The notes: a model not told the origin generated them from the sequence alone. Shown: positions 592 through 26,602, counted from the first letter of the whole stretch. The stretch: DNA of 63,305 nucleotides, filler included, from Octopus bimaculoides (GCF_001194135.2; 5 parts of 4 records of this genome joined end to end with filler, not necessarily neighbours in it), one strand, 5' to 3'. Made by a program: numbers and translations.

Positions 592-757
592 TTATCCCAG
601 ACAACCAACGTAGGAAAATTGTTTAATAGGCATAAGAAGTGCATCGACACTTCGCTGATTCTGATCCGTGTGGTTAATAGAAGGTATATTGCGGAGGTGA
701 AGTAAATCATATCTTAGATGTTCATGCAGATAAAGTACCACATGTCCATTTTCGCCG
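592..757 (-). CDS. Candidate downstream or terminal exon of the PLAT-domain gene
   Basis: Acceptor TTTTTTTTTTATTAG| at 758-760. Phase 0 reads RRKWTCGTLSA*; phase 2 reads GENGHVVLYLHEHLRY...VGCLG*. The frame is unresolved. Confidence 0.3.
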
Positions 758-1009
758 CTAATAAAAAAAAAATTATCCTTCAAGAATTCTTGCATGTTAG
801 GATTATATACGAACACCATGAGATATTCAGTCTGTGTATGCATGAGTGGAACTATATTCTTTGGTATTGGACACATTCACTTAAAATCCAACAATGTGTT
901 TGTCTGAAGTTAACGAAGTAGACTCCAAGACAACTTTGGTCGTCAAGCTTTTATACATTACTATCTCGGTCATCTGCACATGGGAAGGTGAGTGAACAGT
1001 TGTTTCTAA

Positions 1010-1205
1010 CATAGGCAAATGGTCAAATATTTTAAGAAAAAGGGGTTAGTCAATTATATCGACCCAGTTCTTAACTGCTATCGAATTTTATCGACACTGG
1101 AGGGATGAACTTAGCTTCAGTGGGATTTGAACTCAGAATGTAAAAAAGCTGGAAGAAATACTGCAAAATATTTCGTACGATGCTTTAATGATTTTGCCAG
1201 TCCAC
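1010..1205 (-). mobile_element. SINE-like family A, degenerate
   Basis: Reverse-orientation motifs ATCGACCCAG...TTTTATCGAC...GGATTTGAACTCAGAA. Confidence 0.7.
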
Positions 1206-1234
1206 CACTCCATATTCAATAACGGTGATAAGCC

Positions 1235-1410
1235 GATAAACCGAACGTGGAGGTCGACTTGCTAGAAATAGCAGCCAAATACCTTGCAAATCACACTATT
1301 CGTTTGAGAAAAAAACACACGGGAAACATACAGGATGGTTACGAATTGAATGCTTTTGATCACAGGTCTCCTCAATCAGTGCTGACCTAAGGCTAGGCAA
1401 CAAAATCGCT
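1235..1410 (+). repeat. Interspersed repeat family E (TTGCTAGAAATAGCAGCC...GCTGACCTAAGGCTA); related copies near 16600-16765 (+), 38920-39000 (-) and 52340-52450 (-)
   Basis: Shared motifs between copies within the window. Confidence 0.55.
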
Positions 1411-1779
1411 ATGATGATAGTTTCTTTTCAACTACGTGTAAAGTTCATGGAAAGAAAAAAATGGAAAATAACAATTTGATTTCTAGATTACTATGTATAC
1501 ATATATATGTTCAGCCCACTGTCATGTCAGCTGCCAAGAAGTTTAGCTATCTCTTCCGTGCTCCGACACTTGCATCTGAGAGTACATTGTATCTTTATGA
1601 GGCCACCACTCGACTTTGTATTGAATATTGTTGTCATTTTTGGGCTGGTAACTACTCTGAGTGTCGACATTTGCTTAACTGAATTCAGAATTCGGTTAAC
1701 ATGGTGCTCCTATTCTTTCTACTAAGTTGAAGTTTTGGGACCATCGCTGAAATATATCTTCGTTGTGCTTTTTTCGATA

Positions 1780-1800
1780 TCTATATTTATAAAACAAAGG

Positions 1801-1866
<66 letters not shown>

Positions 1867-1944
1867 TAGTAGTAGTAGTAGTAGTAGTACATATATACAA
1901 ACTATGCCAATTTAATCCCGAGCAACGCCGGGTATCTCTGCTAG
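1780..1944 (+). mobile_element. Non-autonomous mini-Helitron carrying (TG)n(TAG)n
   Basis: 5' TC at 1780, hairpin CCCG-AGCAACGC-CGGG at 1917-1932, 3' CTAG at 1941-1944, inserted between A1779 and T1945 with no TSD. Confidence 0.8.
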
Positions 1945-2396
1945 TATATTAATATTTCTGATAAANNNNNNNNNNNNNNNNNNNNNNNNNNNNNNNNNNN
2001 NNNNNNNNNNNNNNNNNNNNNNNNNNNNNNNNNNNNNNNNNNNNNNNNNNNNNNNNNNNNNNNNNNNNNNNNNNNNNNNNNNNNNNNNNNNNNNNNNNNN
2101 NNNNNNNNNNNNNNNNNNNNNNNNNNNNNNNNNNNNNNNNNNNNNNNNNNNNNNNNNNNNNNNNNNNNNNNNNNNNNNNNNNNNNNNNNNNNNNNNNNNN
2201 NNNNNNNNNNNNNNNNNNNNNNNNNNNNNNNNNNNNNNNNNNNNNNNNNNNNNNNNNNNNNNNNNNNNNNNNNNNNNNNNNNNNNNNNNNNNNNNNNNNN
2301 NNNNNNNNNNNNNNNNNNNNNNNNNNNNNNNNNNNNNNNNNNNNNNNNNNNNNNNNNNNNNNNNNNNNNNNNNNNNNNNNNNNNNNNNNNNNNNNN

Positions 2397-2505
2397 TTTC
2401 ATCCTTTCGGGGTCGATAAATTAAGTACCAGTTGCATACTAGGGTCGATATAATCGACTGGCCCCACTCACCCAAAATTTCGGGCCTTGTGCCTAGAGTA
2501 GAAAA
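2397..2505 (+). mobile_element. SINE-like family A, 3' part after a gap
   Basis: TTTCATCCTTTCGGGGTCGATAAATTAAGTACCAG...GGCCTTGTGCCTAGAGTAGAAA. Confidence 0.8.
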
Positions 2506-2654
2506 TAATATATTACCTTTCTGCATTTAAACCAATATTGTTTGTAAGTAAATTCTTTAGTAGTCCTAGTAATTTTTAATTTTTGATTTATTTATAGTTT
2601 ATATAAATTATTTTATGTTAATATTTTATCGATTTTTAGTTTTAGATTTAAACA

Positions 2655-2917
2655 TGGACAGATTTTTATTGAGACCTCAGAAAAATGAGAAAGAGAGTCA
2701 TAGCAAACAAGACGGACACCAGAATAAAAAGGCCACCTCATCAGATCGAAAGTATAATGAAAATTACATCCAATATGGTTTTATATTATCGGAAAAAGAC
2801 GACCCAGTTCCTTTTTGTATGATTTGTTTAACAACACTCTCAAATGAAGCGTTAGTTCCCAGTAAACTTCAACGTCATATAATAACAAATCATCCGCAAA
2901 GTAAAAAAGTTTGGTAG
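2655..2917 (+). pseudogene. hAT (Buster/Charlie-type) transposase N-terminal BED zinc-finger fragment
   Basis: RKYNENYIQYGF...PFCMICLTTLSNEALVPSKLQRHIITNHP has the C-x2-C...H-x4-H pattern of Buster/ZBED5-like N-termini; it stops at 2917. Confidence 0.8.
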
Positions 2918-3389
2918 ATATTGTTTTATACTAATGGCTTCTTTCCTCGAACTGCTACTTTCTGGGACTCATTACTATCGTCTATGATATTCAATTCTTT
3001 AAGCTTTCTATCAGTCAACATCTTTTGAATTCGTAGGCCCCTTCTTTCCATTCTTTGTAGCCCCCTATGTTACAGTGACCTTAATCTTATATGGGACAAT
3101 ATTTAAAAAAAAATCAAAGTTCTAAATTGTTCATTGAAAAAATTATACTTAATTTTTTATTATTTCCTTTTCACTGGAAAATACGTTCCCGTAAACGAAA
3201 TATCTTAGATTGTAAAATATCTATCTCCAAGATGGGAATATCTTTTTGTCACCGTAACAAATATCACGTGATATTATATTTAGAGTAATCGCCATAATTT
3301 TAATTCCGTGGTGAATGAATTCTACTTTTTCAAATCAATCTATTTAATTAAAATATAATTAAAACACATTTCTCATATGCAGTTTTGCA

Positions 3390-3455
<66 letters not shown>

Positions 3456-3585
3456 NNNNNNNNNNNNNNNNNNNNNNNNNNNNNNNNNNNNNNNNNNNNN
3501 NNNNNNNNNNNNNNNNNNNNNNNNNNNNNNNNNNNNNNNNNNNNNNNNNNNNNNNTATGTGTGTGTGTGTGTGTGTGTGAGTGTT

Positions 3586-3627
<42 letters not shown>

Positions 3628-3793
3628 TATGTGCGTGCGTGTGTCAAAGACGTTATTATTGTTTCAGTATCAATTAATTAGAAATGTAACATTTGTTGTT
3701 ACACACAATAGCAAAGGAATGTCGCTAGGATTACCTGTCTCCAAGGGAGATAAATCTAATAAGATCAGTAATCTCGCTTTGAGGAGGACAAAC

Positions 3794-3840
<47 letters not shown>

Positions 3841-4004
3841 GAGAGAGAGAGAGAGAGAGAGAAGACAAACAGAGACAGTGAGATGGTAACAAACTGCTAA
3901 TCATATAAGTTCTTATTTTCAACTGATCAGACAGTTTAACAATAAGAATTTCTCCCTAGCGATATAGAAAGGCAATGTAGAAACGAAAAAGTACCTCCAC
4001 TTAC

Positions 4005-4201
4005 TTTTACTTTTGCACACCTGGTTTCACATTTAACCAGCATTCTGTTTGGATGTATTATTCCGTCATCATTCGGGCAAAATACTTCTTTAACGACTGA
4101 GGTGGGCGTTTGGGAAGAGTATGTCAGCATCTTCGTTAAGGAGCCACTGTTGCTGATCAGGTTCACATGTCTTATCCCTTCGCCAGATATTGACATCAGA
4201 A
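4005..4201 (-). CDS. Candidate exon of the PLAT-domain gene (197 nt, phase 1 to 0)
   Basis: Acceptor TTTTCTGATCTAG| and donor AAA|GTAAGT; open frame LMSISGEGIRHVNL...VFCPNDDGIIHPNRMLVKCETRCAKVK. Confidence 0.55.
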
Positions 4202-4339: not shown

Positions 4340-4560
4340 CAAATTTTGGCACAATGCCAGAAATTTTAGGGGAGTGGTTAAGTCGATTACATCAACCCCA
4401 GTGCTCAACTGGTGCTTATTTTATCGACCACCGAAAGGATAAAAGGCAAACTAAAAACCGGCAGTATTTGAACTCAGAACGTTAAGCCAGAAGAAACATT
4501 GTTAAGCATTTTGTCTGATGCTCTAACTATTCTATCAGCTCACTGCAGTATTCTTTCTAA
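4340..4560 (-). mobile_element. SINE-like family A
   Basis: Reverse-orientation family A motifs. Confidence 0.75.
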
Positions 4561-6108: not shown

Positions 6109-6479
6109 TAGTGCAGATATAAAATTGCGAATATAAAAATTAAACAATAAAAATAAGTTTTTAAGATGCATTTAATTAGCCTAATTATTAATATTTCTCG
6201 TGGAATCTTAGGATTCCAGGAAATTGTAGGTAGCGAAACGTTGCTGTACTGAAGAGTACTCTCCTATTGTCTTATCGGTTTCACTTGACTTGCAGCCATA
6301 CATACATACATACATACCACGGAATCTGAATCAAGCTGTTTTGGATGATATATATATATATGTATGTATGTGTGTGTGTGTGTATGTATGTATTCGCCCA
6401 TGCATACACACATGTACACACACACACACACACACACACACCACATTACACCAAACCACCACACACACATAATAATTAC

Positions 6480-6572
6480 TTGCGAAGTGTGTCTGTAGCC
6501 CGAAAGCTGCCAGGTCACAGAGTTTATTTCTTGAGCATTCCGTTATAAGTTTTTCTTTGTCCAAGTTTGAAT
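6480..6572 (-). CDS. Candidate exon of the PLAT-domain gene (93 nt, phase 1 to 1)
   Basis: Strong acceptor TTCTTTTTCTTGTTTCTACTCAACAG| and donor GCAA|GTAATT; only the phase-1 frame is open: SNLDKEKLITECSRNKLCDLAAFGLQTHFA. Confidence 0.55.
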
Positions 6573-6688: not shown

Positions 6689-6870
6689 ACCGGCGAGCTG
6701 ACAGAATCGTTACTGCGCCGAGCAGAATGCCTAGTGGCCTTCCGTCCGACTTCACGTTCTGAGTTCAAATGCTCCCGGAGTCAACTTTCCCTTTCATTCT
6801 TTCGGGGTCGATGAAATAAGTACCATTTCAACAGTAGGAGCGATGTAATCGACTTATCATCGCCCTTGAA
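6689..6870 (+). mobile_element. SINE-like family A
   Basis: CGGCGAGCTGACAGAATCGTT...GTTCTGAGTTCAAAT...GGGGTCGATG. Confidence 0.8.
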
Positions 6871-7910
6871 GTTTCTGGTATATAGTACGTATTTTATCAT
6901 CAACGTTGGGTGTGATGAAAAGCAAAAATGTTAACGGATTTGGATTTAAGATAAAGAGATATAAAACTAAATACAATAAATAATTTTCTCTCTGGTTGAT
7001 TAAAGATAGGAAGAACAACCAGTCAAAAATATTCTTATAAACATGTAGACAGTAAAATTAAGTGAACTTAGTTCATTCCATCTGCCTTTCTTCTTTCATA
7101 TCATTCATTAAATTTCTCAGCGTAATTACACAATCGGTTTCTTATAATACAGGGGGTGGGGTGAGATACAATTCTATTGTTTTCCTTCTTTTTATAGTTA
7201 TTTTTTTTCTTTTTCATTAACCCTACCGAAATCACATGTAAAAGAAAGTTAGAAAAATCTGAAATCTGCTCCAGCATTGTCACAGCCTCTGGCTGAAACC
7301 GAAAGTAGAGTAATAGAATCTTTAACCAAAGAAAATCGAACTTTAAAACCGATAAGACAAAATGGTATGCAACTCGAATACACAAAACAGAAAAAAAGAT
7401 GAACTGAAATAAGATAAAATGAAATAAATCTTTAAGATATAGTTAGTAGAAAACAGGTAACAGTGAACTCGAAGACAAATCTAAAGAAAATGTCTCAGAA
7501 ACAGAGGAAACAAGTATTGCTGACCTCTGAAATCGATAAAAAAAATCTATTACAATATGTAAAATAGATAATATCAAACAAATATCACAGATGCTTTAAC
7601 CGATTAATGAGAGGAGGATAGACCTAAAATTGAAATTGGAGTAGAAATCAGTTATCAATGAGAATTTCAACTCTATTTTAAAATTTCAAATCTTCAGTAT
7701 GCCATCAAGACCGACTGTGCATTTCATCCTTTCGGGTTTGATAAAATAAGAACTAGTTGAGCACCGGGGTTCCGTGGAATTGACTTGCCCTTTCCCTCAA
7801 AATTGTAGACCTTATGCCACAATTACAAAGAAAAATTTCAATCTTTAGTATCAGTCAGGTGAAATTCTTTCAAACTAATTTTCTTGAATAAAATACCAGC
7901 CAATTCACTA

Positions 7911-8035
7911 GGCGGTGAAGTGGCAGATTTGTTAGAATAGTGGATACACGGCTACGCTGTATTTGTTCTGAGTTCAAATCCTGGTGAGGTTAACTCTGCC
8001 TTTCATCCTTTCTATGTCGATTAAAAAATAGCAGT
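7911..8035 (+). mobile_element. SINE-like family A, inverted partner of 8095-8215
   Basis: AGGCGGTGAAGTGGCAGA...GTTCTGAGTTCAAATCC...GCCTTTCATCC. Confidence 0.75.
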
Positions 8036-8094: not shown

Positions 8095-8215
8095 TTCCCG
8101 AAAAGATAAAAGGAAAAGTCGACTTCAGATGAATTTGAACTCAGAACATAAGGACGAACGAAATGCCGTTGAGTATTTTGCCCGGTGTGCTAACGATTCT
8201 GCCAGCTCGCCGCCT
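8095..8215 (-). mobile_element. SINE-like family A
   Basis: AAAGTCGAC...AATTTGAACTCAGAAC...CTGCCAGCTCGCCGCCTT. Confidence 0.8.
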
Positions 8216-8817
8216 TGCTTTGTGCCTCATATTAATATTTGTTTGGGTTTTAGCTTTGAGGACATGATATCCAGGAATGGAATGACTGCCCAATAACAAT
8301 GACAGGAGCTAACGAGGGTACCTCGTTCTACAATTAATACCTTAAAAAAAAAAACATATTAAATGATACAGTCCTAAATAACCCTCAGCGAAAAAAGAAA
8401 TGAATGTAAAAAAAGTGGAGGGATCAGAGCTGAAATATTTTTAATCATGATTCATCTCAACATCAACAAAAACAACAAGAAATGACCAAGTGAAATCGAC
8501 AATTTCTTTCACCCAATTTTTTAATCAAGAGCGAAAATAGTACTCATGGACCCTTTACAGGGCTTCCAAAACTGATAGGGAGAGAGAAGGAGAAAGATAT
8601 TCTTGAACTGTGACAGGTCATGGCAAGATTTGAACTCAGAATGCAGAGAGATGGAACGAATACTGCAGGATATCTGATCCGACGTTATTATAAACCCCGA
8701 TAGGATGAACTCTGACTACAGAGGATCCAAATAAATACTGTATGGCATTTCTATTCACCTCTAGAGACATTTCTACCTATTGGCAGCAGGAAAAAATAAA
8801 GATTTAGTAAAACTTAC

Positions 8818-8895
8818 CACATCTATTGATATAAATGTAATGTTCGCTTACTGGTCCAATGATAAACATTCTGTATCTCTGTCTTTCTCCATAAA
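8818..8895 (-). CDS. Candidate exon of the PLAT-domain gene (78 nt, phase 1 to 1)
   Basis: Acceptor GATTACAG| and donor TGTG|GTAAGT; reads YGERQRYRMFIIGPVSEHYIYINRC. A second donor GTAAGC at 8846-8851 would give a 44-nt phase 0 to 2 exon, FMEKDRDTECLSLD. Confidence 0.5.
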
Positions 8896-9299
8896 CTGTA
8901 ATCTATTTGAGAAAAAGTAATATTCACTAAATTACTCAAATAAGCAAAGAAATAATTAAAATTTGGCAGTTTTGGGGCGGCTCAACATACACACACACAC
9001 ATGCACACACATATGTATATATTTGTATGCCTGTATGTGTGTGTGTGCGCGCGTATCATTTAATGTACACAGTGTTAAAATAAGAGCTACTAATAGTTTC
9101 TTGTCACGGGGCACCGTAAATAGACTGATTTATATAACACGCCTTGTGTTTCCAAGCAATCTTCAGGCTCAGGGCCACAAGGTCAGTTCTATTTGAAAAC
9201 CTGGACGTTGGTATATAATAAACTATGAAAAAAATCTATGCCATATATAAATGGATCATAAAAATGCAACATATGCGTAGCAGAAAGATCGTATATACT

Positions 9300-10920
9300 T
9301 TTTAGATCCAAGAATCCTATCACACTTCTTAATTGCAGAACCGAAAATTTCAGTAAATGCAAGCGCATAGACGAATTTCTCCTGTCAAACTGGAGTTCTT
9401 TGATTTAAATTAAAATATATAAGAACATTCGGCAGTTCTTTGATCAATGAAATAAGATTGATAGGTTAGAATGCTTAGCAAAAAGGGGAGCTTCCATAAC
9501 TTTAAAAAATCAAAAACTTAATTCTAGCAATAAGCCCACCTGTAGACTTATAAAACCAGTAACAACTGCAATAGGTTTAGTAGCTTCCAAAATACTAAAA
9601 ATTATTAATAAAATTAGGAAGACTACAGAATTACAGCAACAGACAAATAGCAATGTTGTCATAGAAAAGTTTAAGAATGTAAAAGAAAAGCATAGTATTA
9701 GATTTTCACAATTTGATATTGAACTTCTTTGTGGATAATGCAATTGAGTTCATCAGTAATATATATCGATCTTAACAAATCCAAACTTTGACTTTATCAT
9801 GCATGTGCGAAAAATCTCCCTCTTCAGTAAGGGTTCGGCTAGAAGCAAAAAATCTGAACCAGATGAATTGTTTGATGTATCGATGAGAACATCTGACAGT
9901 GCTGATATTTGTGATCTAGTAGGTCTCTTTATATTAGATATACAAAGATCAAAATTTTCCTTCCACGACATTAGTATAAACGGTGATGATGAATTAGGCA
10001 TATCACATGATTGCGATGGACATACACTCAATAAGGAAAAAAATCATTTAGCCAGTTAAGCCTCAAAATCACAGATTTCTTAGATATCTCCCTAAACTTG
10101 TATTCCCACAAAACATTAGAGCCAATAATAGCAATAGGGTATCTACTCTCTCCTCATGTAAAGAAATAATTGATAAGGCAGCCCCTACTAAAATAACGCT
10201 TTGCATAATAGTGGGCTCAAAGAGAAAATAGCTTACACTCCTGCCACAAAAAGTACGAATCCTAAAAATAGACCTAAAAAGATTTTCTTTCGAATGTAAA
10301 AACTAACGCAGCTAGTAAATTCTTTGCCTTAATAGACAAGCATTTCTCGGATAGTTATGAATATTAGAAAATCTTTGATAGATGTTCAGTACAAGTTTTT
10401 TACAGCTGCTGCCCCAACATGAAATATATTATTACACATAGGTCACACCAGGCGCCTACTCTAAAATGTAACTATAGAAACCCATACACTTGCCCACTCA
10501 GCCAGGCATGTATGGTTAGTTAAATGGTCTATGAAGTTAGGTTACTTCAGTTCTACAAAATAATGAGACTCAAAAGAAAAATTCACTGGTTTATTCAAAC
10601 GTGTCTTAAAGATAAGATATGTCAATCACAGGTCTACTTTACAACATGTAGATAAAAAGAAAATCACAAAGTTAACTAGCTATACCTGGGACTTGAGAGC
10701 TAACAATACCCAACACACTATCAAGTAGAGCGTCAAAGAATAACCCATGTCATACGTTGAGGGAGTAAAGGAAGTGCCGGCTTTGTATAACTGAGACATT
10801 TCATATCCTTTTTAAACCCATGGACTCCACCGGCCTACTGAATTCTAGATCCGAAATTTTCACAAAAATTTAAGCATCGGAATAAATTTCTGTTATTGAA
10901 CTGGAAAATACCTACTCTCT
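9300..10920 (+). mobile_element. Degraded Penelope-like retroelement (RT plus GIY-YIG endonuclease)
   Basis: NKPTCRLIKP...FSQFDIE, then HVRKISLF...FDVSMRTSDSADICDLVGLFIL...NGDDELGI (RT motifs), then CNYRNPYTCPL...MVYEV (GIY-YIG region); many stops and frameshifts. Confidence 0.8.
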
Positions 10921-11097
10921 CAGGATGAATCAGGCAATCTCAACTTCAATCTTTCTGTGTTGAATTAACCACCCAACCACTATTAACTCTCATTCTAATG
11001 GATCAAAGTAACACAATTCTTATCTCCACTTCTGTGCTTCTTTTACTTGTTCCCTTCATTCACTTATTGTCTTTCGTTATTTCTCAAATTTTCTCAC

Positions 11098-11128
11098 GGT
11101 ACGCCATCCGACCATCAGAGACATGAAA
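11098..11128 (-). CDS. Candidate 31-nt exon (phase 0 to 1) linking exons 16099-16265 and 8818-8895
   Basis: TATTAG|TTTCATGTC...TACC|GTGAGA, reading FHVSDGRMAY. It supplies the needed phase change, but the acceptor is weak. Confidence 0.3.
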
Positions 11129-11534
11129 CTAATAGTTACTTGAATTTAAATACTGTATGTATGTATGTATGTATGTATGTATGTATGTATGTATGTATGT
11201 ATGTATGCATGCATGTATGCATGTATGTATGTATGTATGTATGTATGTATATCGGGAGATGGATGATATCGTTGATTATCATTGATTTTTAGGAAATTCT
11301 ATAACATTAGGTACATTGTTAATTATTTCATTAAACATCATTCATTTGATAATACTTTCTTAAAGCTAGGTATTTAACATGCAAGTGATAGCCGTGTAAT
11401 GCTGCCAGAAACGGCAAAAGAATGTAACTGACATTGAATATTTACAGCGCAGTGGGAGTGGATGCTCAAGTATTGACAATGATGATTACTTGTCTGTGAT
11501 TGAGCATCCCCCACACGCGCGTACACTTACGCAG

Positions 11535-11660
11535 TTCTTCTTCTTCTTCTTCTTCTTCTTCTTCTTCTTCTTCTTCTTCTTCTTCTTCTTCTTCTTCTTC
11601 TTCTTCTTCTTCTTCTTCTTCTTCTTCTTCTTCTTCTTCTTCTTCTTCTTCTTCTTCTTC
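11535..11660. repeat. (TTC)n microsatellite, about 42 units
   Basis: Pure trinucleotide run. Confidence 0.95.
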
Positions 11661-11744
11661 ATTTCCTGGACATCACTGTCTCAAGTCCTAGAACTCTTCA
11701 GGTTAGTCATCTGGTTTCCATGACGCACGCATACGTGAGCAAGA

Positions 11745-11925
11745 TCACAACATTCCCCAACCCCTGGATGGGATACCAGTCCATTACAGGGCTACTTATT
11801 CATAGTTGAGCGGACTGGAACAGATTGAAATGAAGTGTTTTGCTCAAGAACAGAACGACCACTCGGTCCGGGATCCAAAATCATGATCGATAGATCGTGA
11901 GTGCAACAACCTAACTCCTGGATCT
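11745..11925 (-). mobile_element. SINE family D, partial reverse copy
   Basis: Reverse complement matches 36618-36869 (GCGGACTGGA...AATGAAGTGTTTTGCTCAAGAACA). Confidence 0.7.
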
Positions 11926-15231: not shown

Positions 15232-15900
15232 CATCATCATGCGTAGAGCCGACCAGATCCATCAGTGCTTTCTATCGCCGTCGGTCCTGTGCCAGCTCCT
15301 TTGCATCCTCCAAGGTGACGTCGAGCCTCTGGAGATATTCCCCAATCATTTCCAGTCATCTGGTGCGAGGCCTGTCATGAGGCTTCTTCCATCCCGCCGC
15401 CACTGCGTCGAATTAGTAAAATCCTGGTAGGATGATCTAGCGGGAGACAGAGGACATATCTGTACCAGCACATGCGACGGATAGCTATAAGGTGGGAGAC
15501 TGCAAGTTGATGCGTGTTCGCATGCAATTCTTTGTTGGAAACGTGTGATCGTACCATCTGATATTCTCGGTGGTTCTCAGAGCTCTGCTATTGAAGACGT
15601 CTATCCTCTTTTCCAGTGTCTTCGAGAAAAGCCACGATTCTGCTCCTTAGAGGAGAATGGAGAGGGTCGATGCGTTGTAAATGCGGAGCTTCGTCTTCCG
15701 GGAGCTTCCATAGAGAGTACATGACCCCAGTAGCCAGACCACATCTGCGGTTGATTTCCGGGTTCAGGTCTCCATTGTTGGTGAGTAATGTTTCTACAAG
15801 CCTTAAGATATCTAACAAGTCAGCTCTGCAAGCAACCATCAAAGACCTATCATTCCCAATGTTCCTCCTCCCTAAGCACCAAGTCATAATTTGGGCCTAG
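15232..15900 (-). mobile_element. RTE-clade LINE, 3' fragment of ORF2
   Basis: PEINRRCGLATGVMYSLW...LLYGAES..., NIRWYDHVSNKEL, RPRTR...AQDR; typical RTE C-terminus, disrupted. Confidence 0.75.
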
Positions 15901-16098
15901 GAAGATTGTACTTATCTCTGGGTCTAGCCCTTCCGAAACATCACTGCCATACTACTCTATCTAGGCCAAGTTTCAATCTCGAAGTTAGCCAGAAGGAAGG
16001 TGAGTGAGGGATAATTATAATATAACAATAACAAGGACTACAACAACAACAAACGCAAACAAAAGTAATAACAATATTAAATATAAATAAATACTCAC

Positions 16099-16265
16099 CA
16101 GCAAGTTAGATAAGGTTTTATATGTATATCTCGAAAAATTAAACACATTCAAGTGTCCTAATGTCGGCAGAGCGAATGAGAACACTTCTTCATTTTCACG
16201 ATTAGCTTCATCTTGTGTTCTTTCGTTGATTCCGCAAAATAATTTGCAACATTTGGCCTTTTCTC
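16099..16265 (-). CDS. Exon of the PLAT-domain gene (167 nt, phase 1 to 0)
   Basis: Acceptor GTTTTCAAG| and donor CTG|GTGAGT; reads EKAKCCKLFCGINERTQDEANRENEEVFSFALPTLGHLNVFNFSRYTYKTLSNLL; phase matches exon 20691-20787. Confidence 0.65.
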
Positions 16266-16493
16266 CTTGAAAACATACATGTATCATGTACAACAAGCTG
16301 ATTTCAGAGGAAAACTTTACATACCAGCTGCTATCTGCAATGGAGTAAAAGGCAAAATATATTATGGGAAACACGATCGCACATGTATCTGCACGTACAC
16401 ACAAATACATGTACATCATACATTAATACATAAGCACGAACACGTACGCAACACAAACACACACGCACACACACAAACACATGCACACACGCA

Positions 16494-16551
<58 letters not shown>

Positions 16552-16989
16552 TGCATACATGCCAACAATGAAATACAAGTAACCGAGTTAATCTGAACTT
16601 AGTTGCTAGGTATGCTAGAAAAAGCAGTTAAATCGTCTTAAATATCTCCACCTACTGTCATAATAATAATAAAAAGTATATGATGGTATAATCAAGGCTA
16701 GGGCGTCTTCGATCATAGGTTTGTTCGATCAAGCTCACCCTGGCGCTAAACAACAATAACAATAAAATCTCAATAATTACGACCACTTACTTGCGCATGC
16801 GAACATTTTCGACGAGGATATACTGAGTAAAAGAGAATTGAATCAACTGCAATTCACTACTCCATTTGGATTTACGGTTGAGGGTGGGTTTGCGTTCCTG
16901 CATGCAGACAACTTCAGTGACTGGTCTCAGCATTGCATCAGTGGCATGTGTAGATAGGATGTCTAACCTAAGTCTCTCTCAGGAGACAA

Positions 16990-18618
16990 TTAAAAGTGAG
17001 TGTTTTGGGGACGATTGTTTTGTACTTTACCTCTGGGATGTCACACAAAATCATCCATCAAAAGTTCCCCATCATGCTGGGGGTCCACTTACCTTGGTAC
17101 ATGTTTTCCATCTTAGTAATATCTTGATGGAACCTTTCTTCATGCTCATCACTCACTGCTCTGAGTTTCGAAGGGAAGAAGTTGAGGTGGGAGTGGAAAA
17201 AGTGAATTTTGAGTGACATTCGGCATCCCATATCCTCATAAGACTAGCAACTTCGTTACAAACTTGGTAATCTAGTACTTGTGTGTTACCACGGAAGCCA
17301 TGGAAAACTAACTTAAATGGTCCCCGAGCTCTCCGTTCCGTTAACGTAAGAAGCTCCTCAAAGTCCTTATACTTCAGCACCTCTCGGATCTGAGGTCCGA
17401 CAAAGATGCCCTCCTTGAGCTTAGCAGAACTCAGAGCTGGGAGCAGAGTGCACAAGTGCTGGAAGGCAGCGTCATTTTTGTCCATGGCCTTCACGAAATT
17501 CTTCATTAAACCAAGCTTGATATGAAGAGGAGGAAGAAGCACTTCGTTCATGTCCACCAGAAGATTTTCTTGGATAGTGTGTTCACCAGGCATGAAAGTG
17601 TTCCTAGATCTTGTAGTGCTCGACTGTCCCAGAGACAGAGAAACAACAGTACTTTGTGAAGTCTGCTTGATACCCATAAGGAGCCCAATGACCTTGAGGT
17701 CTCCGCAGAGACCCCACTGGTACTGGTTGTACTTGACAGCTTTCAAAAAGAGCTCCATATTGTCATACGACTTCTTCAGATAGACTGAGTAGGCAATGGG
17801 AATGCTGGGGCATTTATTGCTATCGAGCAGGAGCACGGCTTTCAGACTTCGCTTGGAAGAGACTGTGAAAAGACGCCAGTCTGAGAGATTGTGTTGGAAA
17901 CCAAGGAAGGTGAACAAGCCAGAGATATCTGTGCTGTAGTACAACCTGCTTTCCATGTCGAAGAATGAAGCAAAGTCTTGGTTCCGTGTCCTGAAACTGG
18001 CGATCCTTACATCTGCCTTGATCAGATTCCACTGCTTATGCCGAGATTCCAGGAACTCTGACTGCTGCTTAGATAGATACAAATCATGGGCAAGGTCATT
18101 CAGGTTTTCCTGCGTGATCCAGTGGAGCACATTGCCACTTACTCCTGAATAAACAGAGACATTGTCTCCAGAAGAGATCGCCTTGGCAGAATCTTTCCTT
18201 GAAGGCATTACTTCGTCTGATGAAGTAAGAAGATCCTTATTCGCTTGGGGTGTAGGGACAGGTAGATCATCTGAGTGGGGAACAAGTCTTTTAACTGAGG
18301 GAAGGTTGGAATATTTGATCTTTTTTTTAGAAGAAGCATTGTTAGACAAAAATAACAATCATCTACATGGCTTCGTGGCTGTCTCCAGACCAAGGGACAG
18401 CAAAGTTGAAGGCTGCTTTCTTGCTGTTAAATCATGCAGTTCATCCATTGTGGCTGGGTTTACAAGGGATGCCGCATAATCATAATATGTATAACTCAAA
18501 AACTAGAGATGCTGAGTGAAAACTGGTTTTGTGTCTGAAATTAGCACCCCCCACAAAAAAAAAAAAAAGGCTAGAACAACTATTTTTATGTTTGACTCAA
18601 TTTCTCTGTAAACCAGTG
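16990..18618 (-). mobile_element. Chapaev3-like (CMC superfamily) DNA transposon, internally deleted and 3'-truncated
   Basis: VWRQPRSHVDDCYFC, IKYSNLPSVKRLVPHS, WGLCGDLKV, PPLHIKLGLMKNFVKA and, in a shifted frame, MSLKIHFFHSHL...SDEHEERFHQDI. Terminus CACTG at 18618 is flanked by TTA (TWA site). Confidence 0.72.
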
Positions 18619-19026
18619 TTAGTGACATAGGAAACAGTTGTTCCATTTCTGAGTTTTTTAACGTCCTAAATTCGAAAGTAAAGAAAAATTCGCAAATTGC
18701 TATTCATTTAAGAAAGCAAGGATGTGAGTTANNNNNNNNNNNNNNNNNNNNNNNNNNNNNNNNNNNNNNNNNNNNNNNNNNNNNNNNNNNNNNNNNNNNN
18801 NNNNNNNNNNNNNNNNNNNNNNNNNNNNNNNNNNNNNNNNNNNNNNNNNNNNNNNNNNNNNNNNNNNNNNNNNNNNNNNNNNNNNNNNNNNNNNNNNNNN
18901 NNNNNNNNNNNNNNNNNNNNNNNNNNNNNNNNNNNNNNNNNNNNNNNNNNNNNNNNNNNNNNNNNNNNNNNNNNNNNNNNNNNNNNNNNNNNNNNNNNTA
19001 TATATATATATATATATCCACACATA

Positions 19027-20252
19027 CAGTGTGCGATGAGTAAATTGTTGCCATTTCATATTTTCAATTTCGCGCATGTGCCTTATTTGTTTTTGATTTT
19101 ATCGACTACACAGTATAGTAGGGTCAGTTGACACTGTCTGTGAGAAAAACAACACCGTGACGCAATTCACTCTGCTAGAAACTTGGAAACGACATGCTGT
19201 ACTGCTCGACATTCGCGCAGGAAGCTCCAATACGGACTTTTCAGAATATGTTTTTGGGTGTCAATATGAAGACAGTGCAAGTGATTCGTAGAGTTGGATA
19301 AGTCTAATGGTAATTACGAAGATATAACAGCTCGGAAAACTCACTCTGATCATTCTGAATTTTTTGGTGAGTTCCAGGCCATGATTCGCAACGATCCTTC
19401 CAAGTCACTCAGGTCCATCACCAGGGACTTGAGTGTGTCTGGGTTTCTTATCAGGCAGGTAGTGCATCAAAACATTCGGTATTCGTCATCCAAGATGAAA
19501 AAGGGCCAATTTTTATCTTAAGCCATCAAGGACAAGAAGAAAGACCGCGATACGAAGCTTTTGAATAAATTCAAGCATCCCTTCCAACCAAACATGCTTT
19601 GGTTTTTCTCAGACGAGAAAATTTTCTGCCAGGATCAGATGGTGAACACACAAAACAACCATTGGGTTGCCATGTCCCCAAAATATGTACCGAGAATGAT
19701 AAAAATCAAACGTCCAGTCAACATCACGGTGTTTGGAGTGATCGCTAGTGATGGCGACATTATGCCTCCATTCATCTTCTCACACGGCCTCAACACGGTG
19801 GCCATATCAAGTGTCTGAAAGTGGCTGCTGGAAGACTCTATGTCTAACAAGAGGACTCTGCACTATGCCACACAAGCAGGAGAACCCAGTCATGGCTGTC
19901 AGATAATTTCTGCGACTACATCACCCCTAACATTTGGCCACCTAACCCCCTAGACTGCAACCTCCTTGATTGTTATGTGTGGGGTGCAGTTGAGCGAGAG
20001 ACCAACAAAACTCCTTGTAGCACCAAAGATAAACTGAAGGCAAGGATTATGGCAGCATTCACCAACTGAAACAAGGAGAGCGTCCTGAAGAGTTGCAGGA
20101 GATCCCGAAGTCGTCTGGAGATTGTGGTTGAAGCCAATGGCGATTTTATTGAATAAATTTACTCTTTAGCATTTCAAGATATTTTTATGTAATTTTGGTA
20201 AATATATCTGTTAAGATTATTGTTATTTTCATTTTTACGTTATTTAAACATT
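19027..20252 (+). mobile_element. Tc1/mariner DD37D (maT-type) transposon, degenerate
   Basis: TA|CAGTGTGCG left end; WFFSDEK; exactly 37 residues between the D of DSALCH and the D of NLLDCYVW; right TIR lost in a gap. Confidence 0.85.
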
Positions 20253-20468
20253 NNNNNNNNNNNNNNNNNNNNNNNNNNNNNNNNNNNNNNNNNNNNNNNN
20301 NNNNNNNNNNNNNNNNNNNNNNNNNNNNNNNNNNNNNNNNNNNNNNNNNNNNNNNNNNNNNNNNNNNNNNNNNNNNNNNNNNNNNNNNNNNNNNNNNNNN
20401 NNNNNNNNNNNNNNNNNNNNNNNNNNNNNNNNNNNNNNNNNNNNNNNNNNNNNNNNNNNNNNNNNNNN

Positions 20469-20501
<33 letters not shown>

Positions 20502-20690
20502 TATACATATATATATTTGTATTTATGCATGCATGTATGCGTATTTGGATGTATTTATATATGTGTGTATGTGTGTGTATGAGTGCATGATTAATGTATC
20601 TATTTGTTCCTCATACAGACATGCACGTACATGTATTAGATGTAAATATGCGGCTTTGTCCGAGAATTCATACATTTAAATACCACTTAC

Positions 20691-20787
20691 TTCCTAGATG
20701 CTGATTGATACCCATTACTGCTTCTTTATTTACGATTTTATCATAATGGAAAACTCCCATTTCCGTACCATTGCTGTAGATAGTTAT
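20691..20787 (-). CDS. Exon completing the PLAT/LH2 domain (97 nt, phase 0 to 1)
   Basis: Acceptor TTCTTTCTCTAACTACAG| and donor GGAA|GTAAGT; only the phase-0 frame is open: ITIYSNGTEMGVFHYDKIVNKEAVMGINQHLG, continuing WFLKT in frame. Confidence 0.72.
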
Positions 20788-20889
20788 CTGTAGTTAGAGA
20801 AAGAACTGTCTGTCAAGCTCAATACAGGACATTAAAAAGTATGTAACCATACATCGTAAGTGTAGCACAATATTGTATTACATGGAAAA

Positions 20890-21702
20890 ATGCGAGCAAG
20901 AGAAATAATATTCTTAAGATTGTAAACCTGGAAAAGTACAGGACAAGTTATTATACTTGGAAAAGTTCAGGACAAGAACATTTTTACTTAAAATATTGCA
21001 GATAAGGATAAAATTTCAAATGACATTTAGATTTAGAAAATATTAGCTATTATTAAAACTAATAATTTTATTACAAGTTATTACTTCTGTTTGTTATTAC
21101 TTGTTACTTCTATTAAAAATAAAGAAAATAACTCAATTAGAATATTTTTTGCATTCTGAAAAAAGATTCATTTTTTAAAAATTATTAATTGATAACTAGA
21201 AATATGAAAATAGGTTATAAAAATAATAGTAGTACGTAATTAGTTAGTACAATAAATATAATAATACAAAAATTAGTTATATATTTCAATAAAATCTACC
21301 TATAACAACAAATTCACAGTAAAATTTGCTTGAGTTATTGCCTAAATTATTGCCAAGTTTTCACATTTTTAATCTTGACCCAATGCCTATTTTTTACATA
21401 ATGAATTTGCCTACCATATATACTATTCTACTTTGCATAAAACTTTAGCTATATTGGTACTTCTGGCTCTCATTTTTAAAGTATTCTAGTGTGTCAATAT
21501 TTTAACAAAATGATGGTACCTTTTTTAATTATAATGTTACTTTGTAAATTAAAATCAAATAATTTTCAATATTCAAATTTTATTGTTAGGCTGCAATATT
21601 CTAAATAAAAATTTTCTTATTCTGTACTTTACCAGATGTAATAACTTGTCCTTTACTTTTCCAGGTTTATAAGCTTAAGAATATTAATTCTCTTGCTCGC
21701 AT
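20890..21702. mobile_element. Unclassified non-autonomous element with inverted arms of about 112 bp
   Basis: 20890-21001 versus the reverse complement of 21591-21702 shows about 14 mismatches; AT-rich non-coding interior; the right end abuts a gap. Confidence 0.75.
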
Positions 21703-22611
21703 NNNNNNNNNNNNNNNNNNNNNNNNNNNNNNNNNNNNNNNNNNNNNNNNNNNNNNNNNNNNNNNNNNNNNNNNNNNNNNNNNNNNNNNNNNNNNNNNNN
21801 NNNNNNNNNNNNNNNNNNNNNNNNNNNNNNNNNNNNNNNNNNNNNNNNNNNNNNNNNNNNNNNNNNNNNNNNNNNNNNNNNNNNNNNNNNNNNNNNNNNN
21901 NNNNNNNNNNNNNNNNNNNNNNNNNNNNNNNNNNNNNNNNNNNNNNNNNNNNNNNNNNNNNNNNNNNNNNNNNNNNNNNNNNNNNNNNNNNNNNNNNNNN
22001 NNNNNNNNNNNNNNNNNNNNNNNNNNNNNNNNNNNNNNNNNNNNNNNNNNNNNNNNNNNNNNNNNNNNNNNNNNNNNNNNNNNNNNNNNNNNNNNNNNNN
22101 NNNNNNNNNNNNNNNNNNNTTTCTCGCATCTTTTTTAGTGGGTGTTTGACTGAGAGAGAAAGAGGTGTTGCCTGAGAGAAAGAGAGAGAGGTGTTTTCAG
22201 AGATAGAGAGAGAGGTGTTGTCAGAGAGGGAGTGAGAGAGAGAGAGAGAGAGAGAGGTGTCTTGCTCTGTGTGTGTTTGTGAGAGAGAGGAGAGAGTGAT
22301 AGCGTAAATTTTTATTTATTTAGTTTTTCTTGCATCTTTTCTTAGTGTGTGAGTGATTGACTGAGAGGGAGAGAGAGAGAGAGAGAGAGAGAGTTGTCAT
22401 ATATGTGTAAAATGGCTTGGGTCAGTCACGCACGCACACATACACTTACGTATACCCATTATCAGTCGTATACAAGTACATGCATAAATACATACGCATA
22501 CATGTTTTTTATATGTGTGCGTGTGAGGGAGAGTGAAAAAATCAAGGTATGTGTTCGCATGACAATTTTTTTTGCATGTATGTATAAGTAGCAAAGTAAA
22601 ATTTACGCTAA

Positions 22612-22659
<48 letters not shown>

Positions 22660-22665
<6 letters not shown>

Positions 22666-22790
22666 GTCACATACACACACACACAGCAACACACACACAC
22701 AGCAACACACACACACAGCAACACACACACAGCAGCACACACACACAGCAACACACACACACAGCAACACACACACAGAGCAACACACAC
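22660..22790. repeat. Interrupted (CA)n minisatellite, unit about ACACACACACAGCA
   Basis: About 9 near-identical units following a (CT)n run. Confidence 0.85.
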
Positions 22791-22999
22791 CTCTCTCTCT
22801 TTTACTATTCCAGAACTTAAATGAATGTAATTAACATCGAATATTTGCGGCAAAGTTTCTCATAAAACTAACCAACACACCTACCGTATTGAAAAATTAG
22901 TTTAAATTGCTCTTCATCTTCTAATTAAATAGAGTCACTAAATTCAAGGAGAATATTAGTGGTGCCGGTGTTGGCTACTGTCCCTTCTCCTTGATCTAA

Positions 23000-23600
23000 G
23001 TGTATTAACTGTTACTACCACTCTTCACTCCTTCAATGATTCTCAGGTGTTTTACTATCTCTCTAGTCCTGCACCGAGGACATCAATCATCTCATCTTTC
23101 TCATCAGCCTCAACGATATAAATTCCCACAAGCACCTATTGGCTACCGTACTCCTACCATACAATGTTGTCGGCACAAGTACCAAATCCTTTCCTATAAT
23201 AAAACGCTTTCATCAGTTAGTATCATAATTTACGAGTATTGCTGAACGTCACATCGACATTTCACATGCCCATCATAACTTCAGCATCTACCTTTGCTCA
23301 GCTATCACCGTGCTTGTATATATCGGAAACCCTGACCACTACCTATTCATAACAACACCCCATTAATTCTCATACCATGCGTTAACCCACTTTTATTGAG
23401 CCAACTGACTGAATCTCCACCAGTTGTATGCATGCTACGTTGTCAAGAAATCACCACGACCACAACAACAACAACCAAGACATCTAAGCAAGTAATCGAA
23501 GCTTCTCTCATATCACACGTCTTTCCGTATTACACACACAAGCCCACAACTATATATTCCTTAAGTTGTTTTCACTAAGTCGCACAATAGCAGTATAGAC
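23000..23600 (+). mobile_element. Penelope-like element, degraded C-terminal GIY-YIG region
   Basis: FPQAPIGYR motif and FTC...IY.C....YIG remnants spread across frames. Confidence 0.5.
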
Positions 23601-24339
23601 AAATCTGGAGAAAGTTACCTGCCACCCACCCGAATGAGACGCTTGAACGTATTACCAGAGTTTTTGGAACGATAATCGTCAGTAAATCTAAGGATGCTAT
23701 CGTGCTTTCTCTCTCACCTAAAAATTCCAGGCAATTTTTTTTTCTGGGCTCTTCTTCCTCAACAGGGTCTTTACCGACTTTCCAGATTCTGTCAAATCGT
23801 TACTCTCCTGCCAAGTTCTGCCAATAGATACAATCTGTCGGCAGAATGTTCGTTGAGAAAGTCTCCGCATTTGCTGCCAGTTTGCTTTCAACTCCACACA
23901 GCAAACATTCAATCTAATTCCCACGCAAAGGCTCCTTTCCCACTCTAACAGACTTACAGTTACGCACACAGAGTGCGAACATTTCTCGAGTCGTCTAAAC
24001 ATAATCATATTAGGCAATTTGTTTGATAGTGTTCTTTTTTAATGCATTCAAAGAAACGCATATCATCGTCTCAATATTCATTCTTTGTCTTTTTACAGAG
24101 ACCAACCCCATTCTATGGTTCTTTTATCATGTCTCTCTCTAGTTCTCACTTTGTATTAATTCTTGCTGATAACTACATACAGTTCAAATGGCACCAGAAT
24201 ATGTAGTTATCACCCCTTTATCATTCATTTAATTCCTAGGCATCAGCTACACACAGCCCTCAAATTTGCAACAAATTCTATCCTTAACAATCTCTCATGA
24301 CCTATGATGTAAACTTCATATACAAACACACACCCCTGC

Positions 24340-25735
24340 CTTCAAAAACCACATTCTCTATCTCTCTCCAGCTTCCGGTCACTTATTTTTCGCCTATGTA
24401 ATAACACACGTGCTTTTATCCGGACAATCTGCTCCTTTTCCTCCTCCCGAGACATTTTCCTCTTTCCGACGAAGAGCCATGCTCGAAACGTCATTTCCAC
24501 TTTATTTTTCCATCTAAAACTCTCACAGAGCATCAAATATATATTCACTGTGTACGTCTAATTGACGCTTGTTGTTTCTTTCCTGTTTAAAAATTTTTTT
24601 TTTATTTTTGATATGCCTATTATTGCATGCTACGTCCTTTGGACGATGGTTTGGAGTACTTCATTCGTGGATTACCTTTACACTTGGATTGCGTTACACC
24701 TTTGAATTCCCTCCGAGTATGTTGATTTTGTACCATTGATTGTGAATCATTTAAATTTTTCGTTGGCTCTTTCATCTTTCTTCTTCCTCCTTTCCTATAC
24801 TGCTCCTTTCCTTGCCTCCTCTCTCACACTCCTTTCTACCCCTCACTTCACAATGCCCAGCCGTCATTCCTTCCTCAAGCAACTCCACTTACTTCTCACT
24901 TACTTCCTTTCCAGCTTCTATCCTCAATGCCTGCAACCCTCCATACAATTCTCCCGTTTGCTCTTCAAAAAATCTTGCTTCTCTAGCCATATCTCTTTCC
25001 TGAGCCGATTTCTCCATCATCAAGTCATGCGCTGTGACTTCTGCTTGAAGTTTCACATCACTCCCTATTCTTTTCCCTTCACTGTACCCATCCTCGCACA
25101 CATTTATCACCTTCTTATTCGTACCATCATCCGTTCCATCTTCTCCACTATTCACTCCCTGGATTACCACCTCTCACTAGCTTACGTTCCCTCCTCTCTT
25201 TGCTCTCCACCTTTCAACCAACCTATTTTCCGCTTCCAGCTTAGCCTCAATCACCAGCTCTTCAACTTTCTCACACACACTAAAAACCACAAACTCCTCC
25301 TCCTCCTCCTCCTCCTCCTCATCCTCATCCTCCTCCTCCTCAACCCCACCATTACATCTCCCCTCCCAGCCACACCCCGTCTTTTCCTACTCCCTGCCAA
25401 GTCCATCTCACCCCCGCACTTGCTCCACCCCTCCACTCCGGCCCTTCGCCTCACCACTTCACCATCATTGTCCCCGCACCTACTCCTTGACACACTCTGT
25501 TCCTCTACATCCCCACTTCCACGCACTGTAGTCATCATACTATCCGATCTCCCACTTTCCATAGTTGAACGTTCGCTCTTCGGTAGAGGTCTCCGCTCTG
25601 TACCTCTCACACCCCACTACGATGAATTCAGGAACCGTACGGATGTCGGTCAGTTTCTGTGCCTCACAAAACCGCGCCTTCACAATAGTCGAGATTGTTT
25701 CTCAGAGCCTCTCGTTTTCTCTCTCCAGATCTGCT
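24340..25735 (+). mobile_element. Penelope-like element: terminal (pLTR-like) region followed by ORF N-terminus
   Basis: C(C)GACGAAGAGCCATGCTCGAAACG end motif; SHISFLSRFL...DFCLKFH and VVIILSDLPLSIVERSLFGRGLRSVPL...DEFRNRTDVGQF are typical Penelope pre-RT motifs. Confidence 0.7.
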
Positions 25736-25933
25736 ACATTTAATAGTTCATAAAGCGTAGCATAAATTTTTTAAACTATGAAGCATAAAATCCTTTCGGA
25801 AATTATGGAAAACAAAAAGCGACTAATATAAAACATATATTGTACCAAAAATATAATAATTTGAAACAGAAGAGGCACAGGCCTATTGACTAAATGTATT
25901 AACATAAAATATCAGAAAAATAGATTCAAGTAC

Positions 25934-26095
25934 CACTAGCGTAGCTAAAGTGTGTGCCGCCCGGGACGCCCTTCCGTTTGCCGCCCCCGGACCCCATAAA
26001 AATACATATTACCTACAGCAGACCCAAAAGTGCTGCCCTCTTAAAAGTGCCGCCCGGGGTGGACTTCTCCTACCGCCCCCCTAGCTACACTAGTG
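25934..26095. mobile_element. hAT-type MITE (162 bp)
   Basis: TIR CACTAGCGTAGCTA / TAGCTACACTAGTG (13 of 14 match); 8-bp TSD TCAAGTAC / TCAAGTGC. Confidence 0.88.
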
Positions 26096-26369
26096 TCAAG
26101 TGCCTAATTTGAGAGAGAGAGGGAGAAAAAAGAGAGAAAGAGAAAGAGAGAGAAAGAGAGAGAAAGTGAGAAAGAGAGAGAGAGTAATGAAGATTCTGTA
26201 GGGTAATCAGTAATATGCTTTACAGGTAAGTAATAGGTAGTACGCAGTTCGAATCTCTTCGGTGGCTAGTTTCTGTTTTGTCTGAAATTGGCTGTTATAT
26301 TAAATATAACTTTACACTGAAAAATTTCAGCAGTTCGATCTTTCGTTCATTATCGATTATTTTACTTAC

Positions 26370-26602
26370 TGTTTTCAAGAACCATCTTGAAGTTGCTTTT
26401 CTTCTATATACACTAATATATTGCACCTGCTTACAAATTAAACTGGAGACTGTAATGTTATCAGTTGTATTTGGTTGAAAATTATCGTTTGGTGAGCCCA
26501 ACATGGCTTCTAATATTCCATTGGTGCAATATAATCTTAGTATTATATCATCTTCATTTCCAGTTTCTCCTGTTTCTACTTGAACGAGCAGTTGCATAGT
26601 CT
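26370..26602 (-). CDS. PLAT/LH2-domain exon of an unrecognised gene (233 nt; ATG at 26597)
   Basis: Acceptor CTTTCTTTTAACATTCATCACTTCAG| and donor ACA|GTAAGT. MQLLVQVETG...DDIILRLYCTNG...LGSPNDNFQPNTTDNITV...ISVYRRKATSRWFLKT fits the PLAT pattern (V-x-TG, NF-x4-D, WFL-x2-I). Confidence 0.75.

Follow-up and report, generated by a model that had tools for sequence, protein, structure and literature searches.

Does a gap-interrupted stretch of the Octopus bimaculoides genome hold a hidden multi-exon gene that opens with a PLAT/LH2 domain, as an initial annotation made from the sequence alone had claimed? The window analyzed here is a stretch of 63,305 nucleotides (nt), filler included, and the piece in question (positions 1-28005; 38% G+C, microsatellite-rich, with five N gaps) belongs to O. 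bimaculoides chromosome CM046614.1 and equals, reversed and at 100% identity, positions 57342-85346 of the 110-kb locus L004. Our analysis indicates that the minus-strand segments of this piece very probably represent coding exons 9-14 of the 16 in RefSeq gene LOC106876258, encoding residues 337-650 of its product, with a PLAT-like module contained in exons 9 and 10. The locus is already in RefSeq, and no unannotated gene was uncovered: the whole gene spans 90 kb (10001-100008 of L004), and its product of 790 amino acids (aa), XP_052828546.1 (P0008), bears the name "uncharacterized protein." With P0008 as query, no homologue outside Octopus was found; the search did recover an orthologue in O. 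sinensis, LOC118766049 (P0010; 792 aa), which is 86% identical at full coverage. Since these annotations and an O. vulgaris model exist, the gene is not hidden, and from the earlier view of a hidden, lineage-specific protein only the second half survives, in that homologues were seen in Octopus only.

The piece was tied to this gene by an exhaustive HMMER search of 1.84 billion proteins using exon 9 alone (76 aa), which found internal matches at 100% identity in P0002 (residues 96-171) and P0003 (residues 399-474), an 86% identical match in the O. vulgaris protein P0004 and, as the best match outside the octopuses, P0007, a protein of 2248 aa (E=6e-4). Cluster look-ups identified P0003 as XP_014780233.1 of O. 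bimaculoides LOC106876258, in a cluster that also includes the current model P0008 and the retired neighbour LOC106876259 (P0009), and P0004 as CAI9732740.1. A word-indexed search with the first three proposed exons returned only P0001, a read-through genomic open reading frame (ORF) of a relative, and missed the 100%-identical annotated proteins, its index being lossy. No record of the 100-aa read-through ORF of exon 9 as a called gene was found, and literature searches with the locus and protein identifiers and with PLAT in octopus found nothing relevant.

The gene structure was examined by rebuilding the 16-coding-exon models of P0008 and P0010 on their genomes, the O. sinensis locus (L003, 80.5 kb) being free of gaps. 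All introns in both models are GT-AG and the translations equal the deposited proteins exactly, which confirms the multi-exon minus-strand gene that had been proposed. The coding exons inside the piece are as follows.

26370-26602, minus strand: exon 9, 233 nt, phase 1 to 0, residues 337/338-414, encoding the first ~77 residues of the PLAT-like module M3.
20691-20787, minus strand: exon 10, 97 nt, phase 0 to 1, residues 415-447, encoding the final strands of M3.
16099-16334, minus strand: exon 11, 236 nt, phase 1 to 0, residues 448-525, with its true acceptor at 16335-16336.
8818-8902, minus strand: exon 12, 85 nt, phase 0 to 1, residues 526-554, ITVYGERQRYRMFIIGPVSEHYIYINRC.
6480-6572, minus strand: exon 13, 93 nt, phase 1 to 1, residues 555-585; contains two conserved Cys.
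4005-4201, minus strand: exon 14, 197 nt, phase 1 to 0, residues 586-650; contains three conserved Cys and is the final coding exon in the piece.

Exon 9 (26370-26602) matches P0008 and P0003 at 100% and is 94.4% identical in O. sinensis, where it is free of indels and keeps its AG/GT borders, while exon 10 is 94.8% identical in that species. Exon 11 is open, indel-free and AG/GT-bordered both in O. sinensis and on Logan contig L001, from a relative further removed (84.6% nt identity), and exons 12, 13 and 14 are also present in the O. vulgaris model P0004. In the genome, exon 8 lies ~3.7 kb past the end of the piece and exon 15 ~3.9 kb past its start, so that ~336 residues are encoded upstream of the piece and 140 downstream of it. 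Across the whole gene the intron phases run 1,1,1,1,0,1,0,1,0,1,0,1,1,0,1, none of them being phase 2.

The exon chain first proposed for this strand consisted of seven segments that are all flanked by AG/GT and whose phases join into an open frame of 297 codons from an ATG at 26597. Under comparable splice-site criteria, the minus strand offers 146 candidate exon/frame combinations, the plus strand 145 and Markov shuffles 107-161, and phase-consistent chains of 24-35 such "exons" can be constructed in all three. Because similar chains arise on the plus strand and in shuffled sequence, the chain alone is no better than chance. Comparison with the rebuilt RefSeq model separates its parts: four exons (26370-26602, 20691-20787, 6480-6572 and 4005-4201) are exact, whereas two others have wrong acceptors and two segments are spurious. 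The third exon had been given an acceptor AG that lies within the true exon (16266-16267), so that it began at 16265 instead of 16334 and lost 69 nt, and the fifth had been started at 8895, 7 nt late with respect to 8902. This 7-nt error is offset by a 31-nt mini-exon at 11098-11128; no model uses this mini-exon, and it has no collinear counterpart in O. sinensis. An exon proposed from position 757 onward (ORF 592-876) is likewise used by no model and falls within a stretch that lacks a collinear O. sinensis counterpart.

We then asked what the first two of these exons encode. The spliced product of exons 9 and 10 matches Pfam PLAT (PF01477) at 23.3 bits (E=1e-4; gathering cut-off 23) and, at ~20-21 bits, ATS3 (PF06232; cut-off 27 bits), a family of the PLAT clan whose alignment covers the C-terminal half of the module up to the end of exon 10. 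The PLAT/LH2 call made earlier for these two exons is thus borne out by the HMMER/Pfam check, but from the spliced product: taken separately, exon 9, the read-through ORF of exon 9 and exon 10 all lack a Pfam match. The precomputed Pfam field is empty for both P0010 and the older model P0003. The distant match P0007 contains 11 PLAT stretches by Pfam (435 bits), and a custom iterated hidden Markov model (HMM) detected 13 repeats in it. An HMM built from these 13 repeats aligns positions 3-100 of its 102 to residues 342-434 of the octopus protein at 19.9 bits, gives 3.5 bits for the preceding module M2 and has no match elsewhere in the putative ectodomain.

This assignment was complemented by structure prediction. 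A template-free AlphaFold2 (AF2) model of residues 237-447, made from a two-sequence alignment, has a predicted local distance difference test score (pLDDT) of 46 overall, and shows M3 as eight strands at pLDDT 50-59. When this low-confidence model was compared with the PDB by Foldseek, nearly all of the top 50 matches were PLAT domains, over ~110 columns with root-mean-square deviations mostly of 3.6-5.7 A, E values of 1e-3 to 5e-2 and probability 1.00. These domains come from four families and include coral 8R- and human 5-, 12- and 15-lipoxygenases, the alpha-toxin of C. perfringens and pancreatic lipase-related proteins. Sequence searches against the PDB gave nothing relevant; the single domain had one above-threshold match, attributable to chance (E=1.8), and no match was obtained with the orthologue profile. 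Taken together, these findings make it highly probable that residues 338-447, encoded by exons 9 and 10, adopt a divergent PLAT-type fold, an eight-stranded beta-sandwich.

Several points weigh against our interpretation of the gene and its module. The PLAT score in the full-length proteins falls below the cut-off (20.8 bits in O. bimaculoides and 22.4 bits in O. sinensis), the two-module AF2 model is of low confidence, and the full-length AF2 model reaches a pLDDT of 27. The gene models are computational (Gnomon and an O. vulgaris pipeline), and in older O. bimaculoides models the gene was divided into two. The overall ratio of nonsynonymous to synonymous substitution rates (dN/dS) against O. 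sinensis is 0.82, and substitutions are spread evenly over the three codon positions (21/16/19), a combination that fits weakly constrained sequence. The putative signal peptide and transmembrane helix of the protein were judged by eye and hydropathy alone, and any function proposed for it would be wholly inferred.

Some of these points also speak for the view that the PLAT similarity is spurious and that residues 338-447 form some other beta-rich region which brushes the PLAT and ATS3 profiles by chance. Besides the score on the gathering threshold, the low-confidence model and the lack of a PDB match by sequence, this view can draw on an hhalign comparison with the P0007 PLAT-repeat profile, which reaches just P=0.006. 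We nevertheless consider it improbable, as partly independent lines, namely two Pfam models of the PLAT clan, the phmmer match to a multi-PLAT protein and the custom HMM, give one full-length alignment, and as a model made without templates draws, in Foldseek, hardly any matches other than PLAT domains, these belonging to four unrelated families of proteins.

The PLAT-like module also appears to have a neighbour of common origin. M2 (residues 237-337, exons 7 and 8), directly upstream of M3, aligns with it over the whole length with a Smith-Waterman z of 5.6-5.8 that 0 of 200-300 shuffles reach, and the two share a similar exon layout, with 212 plus 91 nt in M2 against 233 plus 97 nt in M3 and phases 1-0-1 in both. 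Judged from these sequences, M2 is a degenerate tandem copy of the PLAT-like module. The same phases, 1-0-1, recur in five exon pairs (5-6, 7-8, 9-10, 11-12 and 14-15), with sizes of 179-236 nt plus 85-97 nt, and the second exons of M2, M3 and M4 begin with ITFY, ITIY and ITVY (p=0.004 in a fixed-register comparison made post hoc). This pattern of phases and sizes suggests a gene built by repeated duplication of a two-exon module, with sequence similarity backing M2/M3 and, weakly, M4; PLAT-likeness was not detected in M1, M4 or M5 by pairwise Smith-Waterman or hhalign comparisons. That the whole ectodomain would be an array of PLAT-derived modules, generated by tandem duplication of the two-exon unit and displayed on the cell surface through a transmembrane anchor, is an unlikely extension of this view, and we know of no surface-displayed PLAT array.

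Whether the 790 codons form a functional gene at all was assessed by comparison with O. sinensis. The introns differ by 7.0% with 8.6 indel events per kb, and the six exons in the window differ by 5.95% with 0 indels in 941 nt (P=3e-4). In the coding sequence as a whole, 158 substitutions were counted, the only indel (6 nt) keeps the frame and no stop occurs; none of the 30 splice sites or 20 Cys is lost. The dN/dS by module is ~0.5 in the two PLAT-like modules and 0.87-1.4 in M4 and M1. As frame, splice sites and Cys are kept despite the overall dN/dS of 0.82, we regard this as a real, rapidly evolving gene, whose ORF, on this comparison of sequences, appears to be maintained by selection while the protein evolves very fast. 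Such fast evolution could fit either a recognition role or mere weak constraint.

A decaying pseudogene, or a non-coding transcript stitched into an ORF by gene predictors, would share several of these features, since dN/dS is high, substitutions show no excess at third codon positions, exon divergence is barely under that of the introns, no homologue was found outside Octopus and no paper was found that names the locus. Neutral decay, however, predicts ~5 stops and, at the intron indel rate, ~20 indel events, against the observed absence of stops (P=0.005 under random substitution) and the single in-frame indel (P(<=1)=3e-8). The conserved splice sites and Cys, the open and AG/GT-bordered exon 11 in a relative at ~80-85% nt identity and the lower dN/dS of the PLAT modules argue in the same direction, and we consider a non-functional locus very unlikely.

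Two further observations concern the pace of change along this gene. In residues 586-682 (exon 14 at 4005-4201 plus exon 15; module M5), 22 nonsynonymous and 2 synonymous changes were counted, a dN/dS of ~3.3 from two species and few counts, with all Cys kept; M5 is possibly under positive selection. The 3' 95 nt of exon 11 (16099-16193, minus strand; L001 ~970-1066) are 94% identical to the relative, with flanking intron at 79-86%, and include a run of ~60 nt unchanged even at third codon positions, which may be due to chance or to a constraint other than coding, for example a splicing enhancer.

The position of the module within the protein was considered next. The initial annotation had placed PLAT at the N-terminus of a protein of ~300 aa starting at ATG 26597, by analogy with animal lipoxygenases, which begin directly with this domain. 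Exon 9 is entered in phase 1 at 26602 (...HPQYQ before the junction, TMQLLVQ... after it), so that this ATG encodes the internal Met339 and the domain occupies residues 338-447 of 790; the analogy fails because ~336 residues lie upstream of that codon. A stand-alone protein with this start would gain from the A at position -3 of the ATG and from its location two residues before the first PLAT strand, and an internal promoter or alternative first exon is possible. Yet three O. bimaculoides models and those of O. sinensis and O. vulgaris all continue from upstream exons across the acceptor at 26602, the 336 codons before it stay open in both O. bimaculoides and O. sinensis, and exons 7-8 among them encode the paralogous module with a like exon structure. 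Such a product is very unlikely, and the module is best treated as an internal part of the 790-aa protein.

The remainder of this protein suggests an extracellular setting. Exon 1 (MDTCFGHKTTKPSKLSSLLLILMFTSFTEG) resembles a signal peptide, as judged by eye, in its n-h-c regions and ends with ...TEG at a phase-1 intron, while the sole strongly hydrophobic segment by hydropathy lies at ~750-783 and is followed by KWVYTTMFLKI. All 15 N-x-S/T sequons stand before this segment (expected 8.3+-2.5, p=0.01). These features point to a type I single-pass membrane glycoprotein, in which exon 1 would encode a cleavable signal peptide, residues 31 to ~746 would form a glycosylated, disulfide-bonded ectodomain, and a single transmembrane helix at ~750-778 would lead into an 11-residue cytoplasmic tail, giving a membrane protein that would carry no signalling domain. 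The initial annotation had suggested a membrane-targeting protein; in the present view, attachment to the membrane would come from the C-terminal helix. PLAT domains of secreted lipases and of bacterial alpha-toxin dock on lipid surfaces or colipase. By analogy, the mode of action that we favour, itself less likely than not, is that the octopus protein may act as a surface-displayed or secretory-pathway binding protein and would use its PLAT-like modules to attach to a partner protein or to the surface of a lipid layer.

No other domain identity was supported. Full-length Pfam scans of P0008 and P0010 at E<=10 gave PLAT, matched once per protein, and ATS3 only, with no Lipoxygenase (PF00305), REJ, GPS, PKD, PKD_channel, lipase or Gal_Lectin match, in agreement with the earlier remark that lipoxygenase, lipase and polycystin features are not visible. 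PF00305 was also absent from the minus strand of the piece in a Pfam scan of concatenated stop-to-stop segments, an insensitive scan that also missed PLAT. The Cys spacing in the tail had been said to recall SUEL lectins; the SUEL/Gal_Lectin family (PF02140) gave no Pfam match at E<=10 to either the tail or the full-length protein, and this suggestion therefore found no backing. There is practically no chance that the gene is simply orthologous to a lipoxygenase, to LOXHD1 or to a PKD1-like polycystin: it shares a PLAT-like domain with them and its best distant match is a multi-PLAT protein, but both orthologues gave none of the Lipoxygenase, REJ, GPS, PKD or PKD_channel matches, the N-terminus is signal-like with a single predicted transmembrane helix, and just one clear and one degenerate PLAT module are present.

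Comparison with known PLAT systems sets out where the octopus protein stands. Its best structural matches, from the modelled M3, are the PLAT domains of animal lipoxygenases (coral 8R- and human 5-, 12- and 15-lipoxygenase), and the M3 strand motif W-[FY]-L-K-x-I-T-[IL] resembles what we take to be that of ALOX5. Unlike lipoxygenases, the octopus protein lacks a catalytic domain, carries PLAT at residues 338-447 rather than at the N-terminus and appears to enter the secretory pathway. The pancreatic lipase family and C. perfringens alpha-toxin, with their C-terminal PLAT domains, are also among the Foldseek matches and offer an extracellular PLAT setting such as the octopus protein may have, but the latter has no lipase or phospholipase C domain and would place the module in a membrane-anchored, non-enzymatic protein.

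LOXHD1 and other multi-PLAT proteins, for example P0007, the closest non-octopus sequence match, have tandem PLAT-like modules in common with it. LOXHD1 is cytosolic, whereas the octopus protein has one clear and one degenerate module, possibly a third, together with a signal-like N-terminus and a putative transmembrane anchor. The polycystin-1 family (PKD1, PKD1L1-3, PKDREJ, LOV-1) likewise comprises membrane proteins with a PLAT domain. In these proteins a cytoplasmic PLAT domain follows the first of 11 transmembrane helices, and REJ and GPS domains are present; the octopus protein differs in having no detected REJ or GPS and a single hydrophobic segment that is C-terminal to PLAT. Plant PLAT1/ATS3 proteins (PF06232), which combine a signal peptide with a PLAT domain, correspond to the second Pfam match of the octopus module, below the 27-bit cut-off, but are small single-domain proteins that have no transmembrane anchor.

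The sequence between the exons was also characterized. All five assembly gaps are intronic (introns 9, 10 and 14) and no exon abuts any of them. In the O. sinensis locus, which is free of gaps, the exons have the same order and the corresponding introns comparable lengths (intron 9, 5582 vs 5378 nt; intron 10, 4356 vs 4511 nt). The introns and the repeat copies in the piece are as follows.

20788-26369, minus strand: intron 9, with a gap at 21703-22119 and low-complexity ORFs at 24904-25616; collinear with O. sinensis.
16335-20690, minus strand: intron 10, with gaps at 18732-18998 and 20253-20468 and a 401-aa ORF at 17153-18358.
8903-16098, minus strand: intron 11, with a species-specific insertion at 9335-14422 that holds a Helitron fragment; the mini-exon 11098-11128 is inside it.
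1-4004, minus strand: initial part of intron 14 (total length 7868 nt), with gaps at 1966-2396 and 3456-3555 and the ORF 592-876, non-coding for LOC106876258.
60-340, 1035-1175, 2397-2459, 4378-4541, 6691-6856, 7712-7770, 7965-8024 and 8100-8216, both orientations represented: copies of a short interspersed repeat.

In intron 11, a Helitron fragment extends over 12762-14395 on the plus strand, where the ORF 12762-13112 matches Helitron_like_N (E=2.8e-38) and is followed by broken ORFs. The ~5 kb around it (9335-14422) have no collinear O. sinensis counterpart and are therefore attributed to an insertion in the O. bimaculoides lineage. The longest ORF of the piece (17153-18358, minus strand, 401 aa), in intron 10, is on the strand of the gene, has no Pfam match and is probably a transposon protein. 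In intron 14, the plus-strand ORF 2615-2917 shows weak similarity to Spin-doc zf-C2H2_12 (E=3e-4) and zf-BED (E=0.03), both below their cut-offs, and may be the remnant of a hAT-type transposon. The low-complexity region of intron 9 contains an E-rich minus-strand ORF (24904-25616), which supplied exons of the retired UniParc model P0002, and a plus-strand ORF of 335 aa rich in S, L and P (24736-25743). Junk intronic exons were taken up by retired models more generally, as the tail of P0002 (24904-25616), the tail of P0003 (18362-18451) and the head of P0009 (17094-17111) are of this kind, the last two being drawn from the 401-aa ORF or its immediate vicinity.

The short interspersed repeat measures ~170-280 nt, and occurs in both orientations with copies 71-87% identical. 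The piece contains eight of them, complete or fragmentary, and the 110-kb L004 has 12 matches, with copies also scattered in the O. sinensis locus. A homopolymer run of ~130-160 nt (poly-A on the minus strand, poly-T on the plus strand) is located at 11486-11723, and microsatellites of the (CA)n, (TC)n and (TATG)n types adjoin several exons, for example at 16420-16560 and 6290-6440. No tRNA was found in the piece by ARAGORN, and no Rfam family was found there.

Overall, the locus encodes what we interpret as a divergent PLAT-containing protein, so far seen in Octopus only, and the new elements are the assignment of a domain to an uncharacterized RefSeq protein, a correction of the architecture first proposed for it and the evidence for an ORF that is maintained although its amino acids evolve in a near-neutral manner. 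The finding is a modest lead. Taxon-restricted, fast-evolving surface proteins are candidates for lineage-specific cephalopod biology, and a PLAT-array protein, if the module array were real, would be a candidate recognition molecule, for example between gametes, in immunity or in contact chemosensation. If true, an extracellular, membrane-anchored PLAT-type module would widen the known contexts of this domain.

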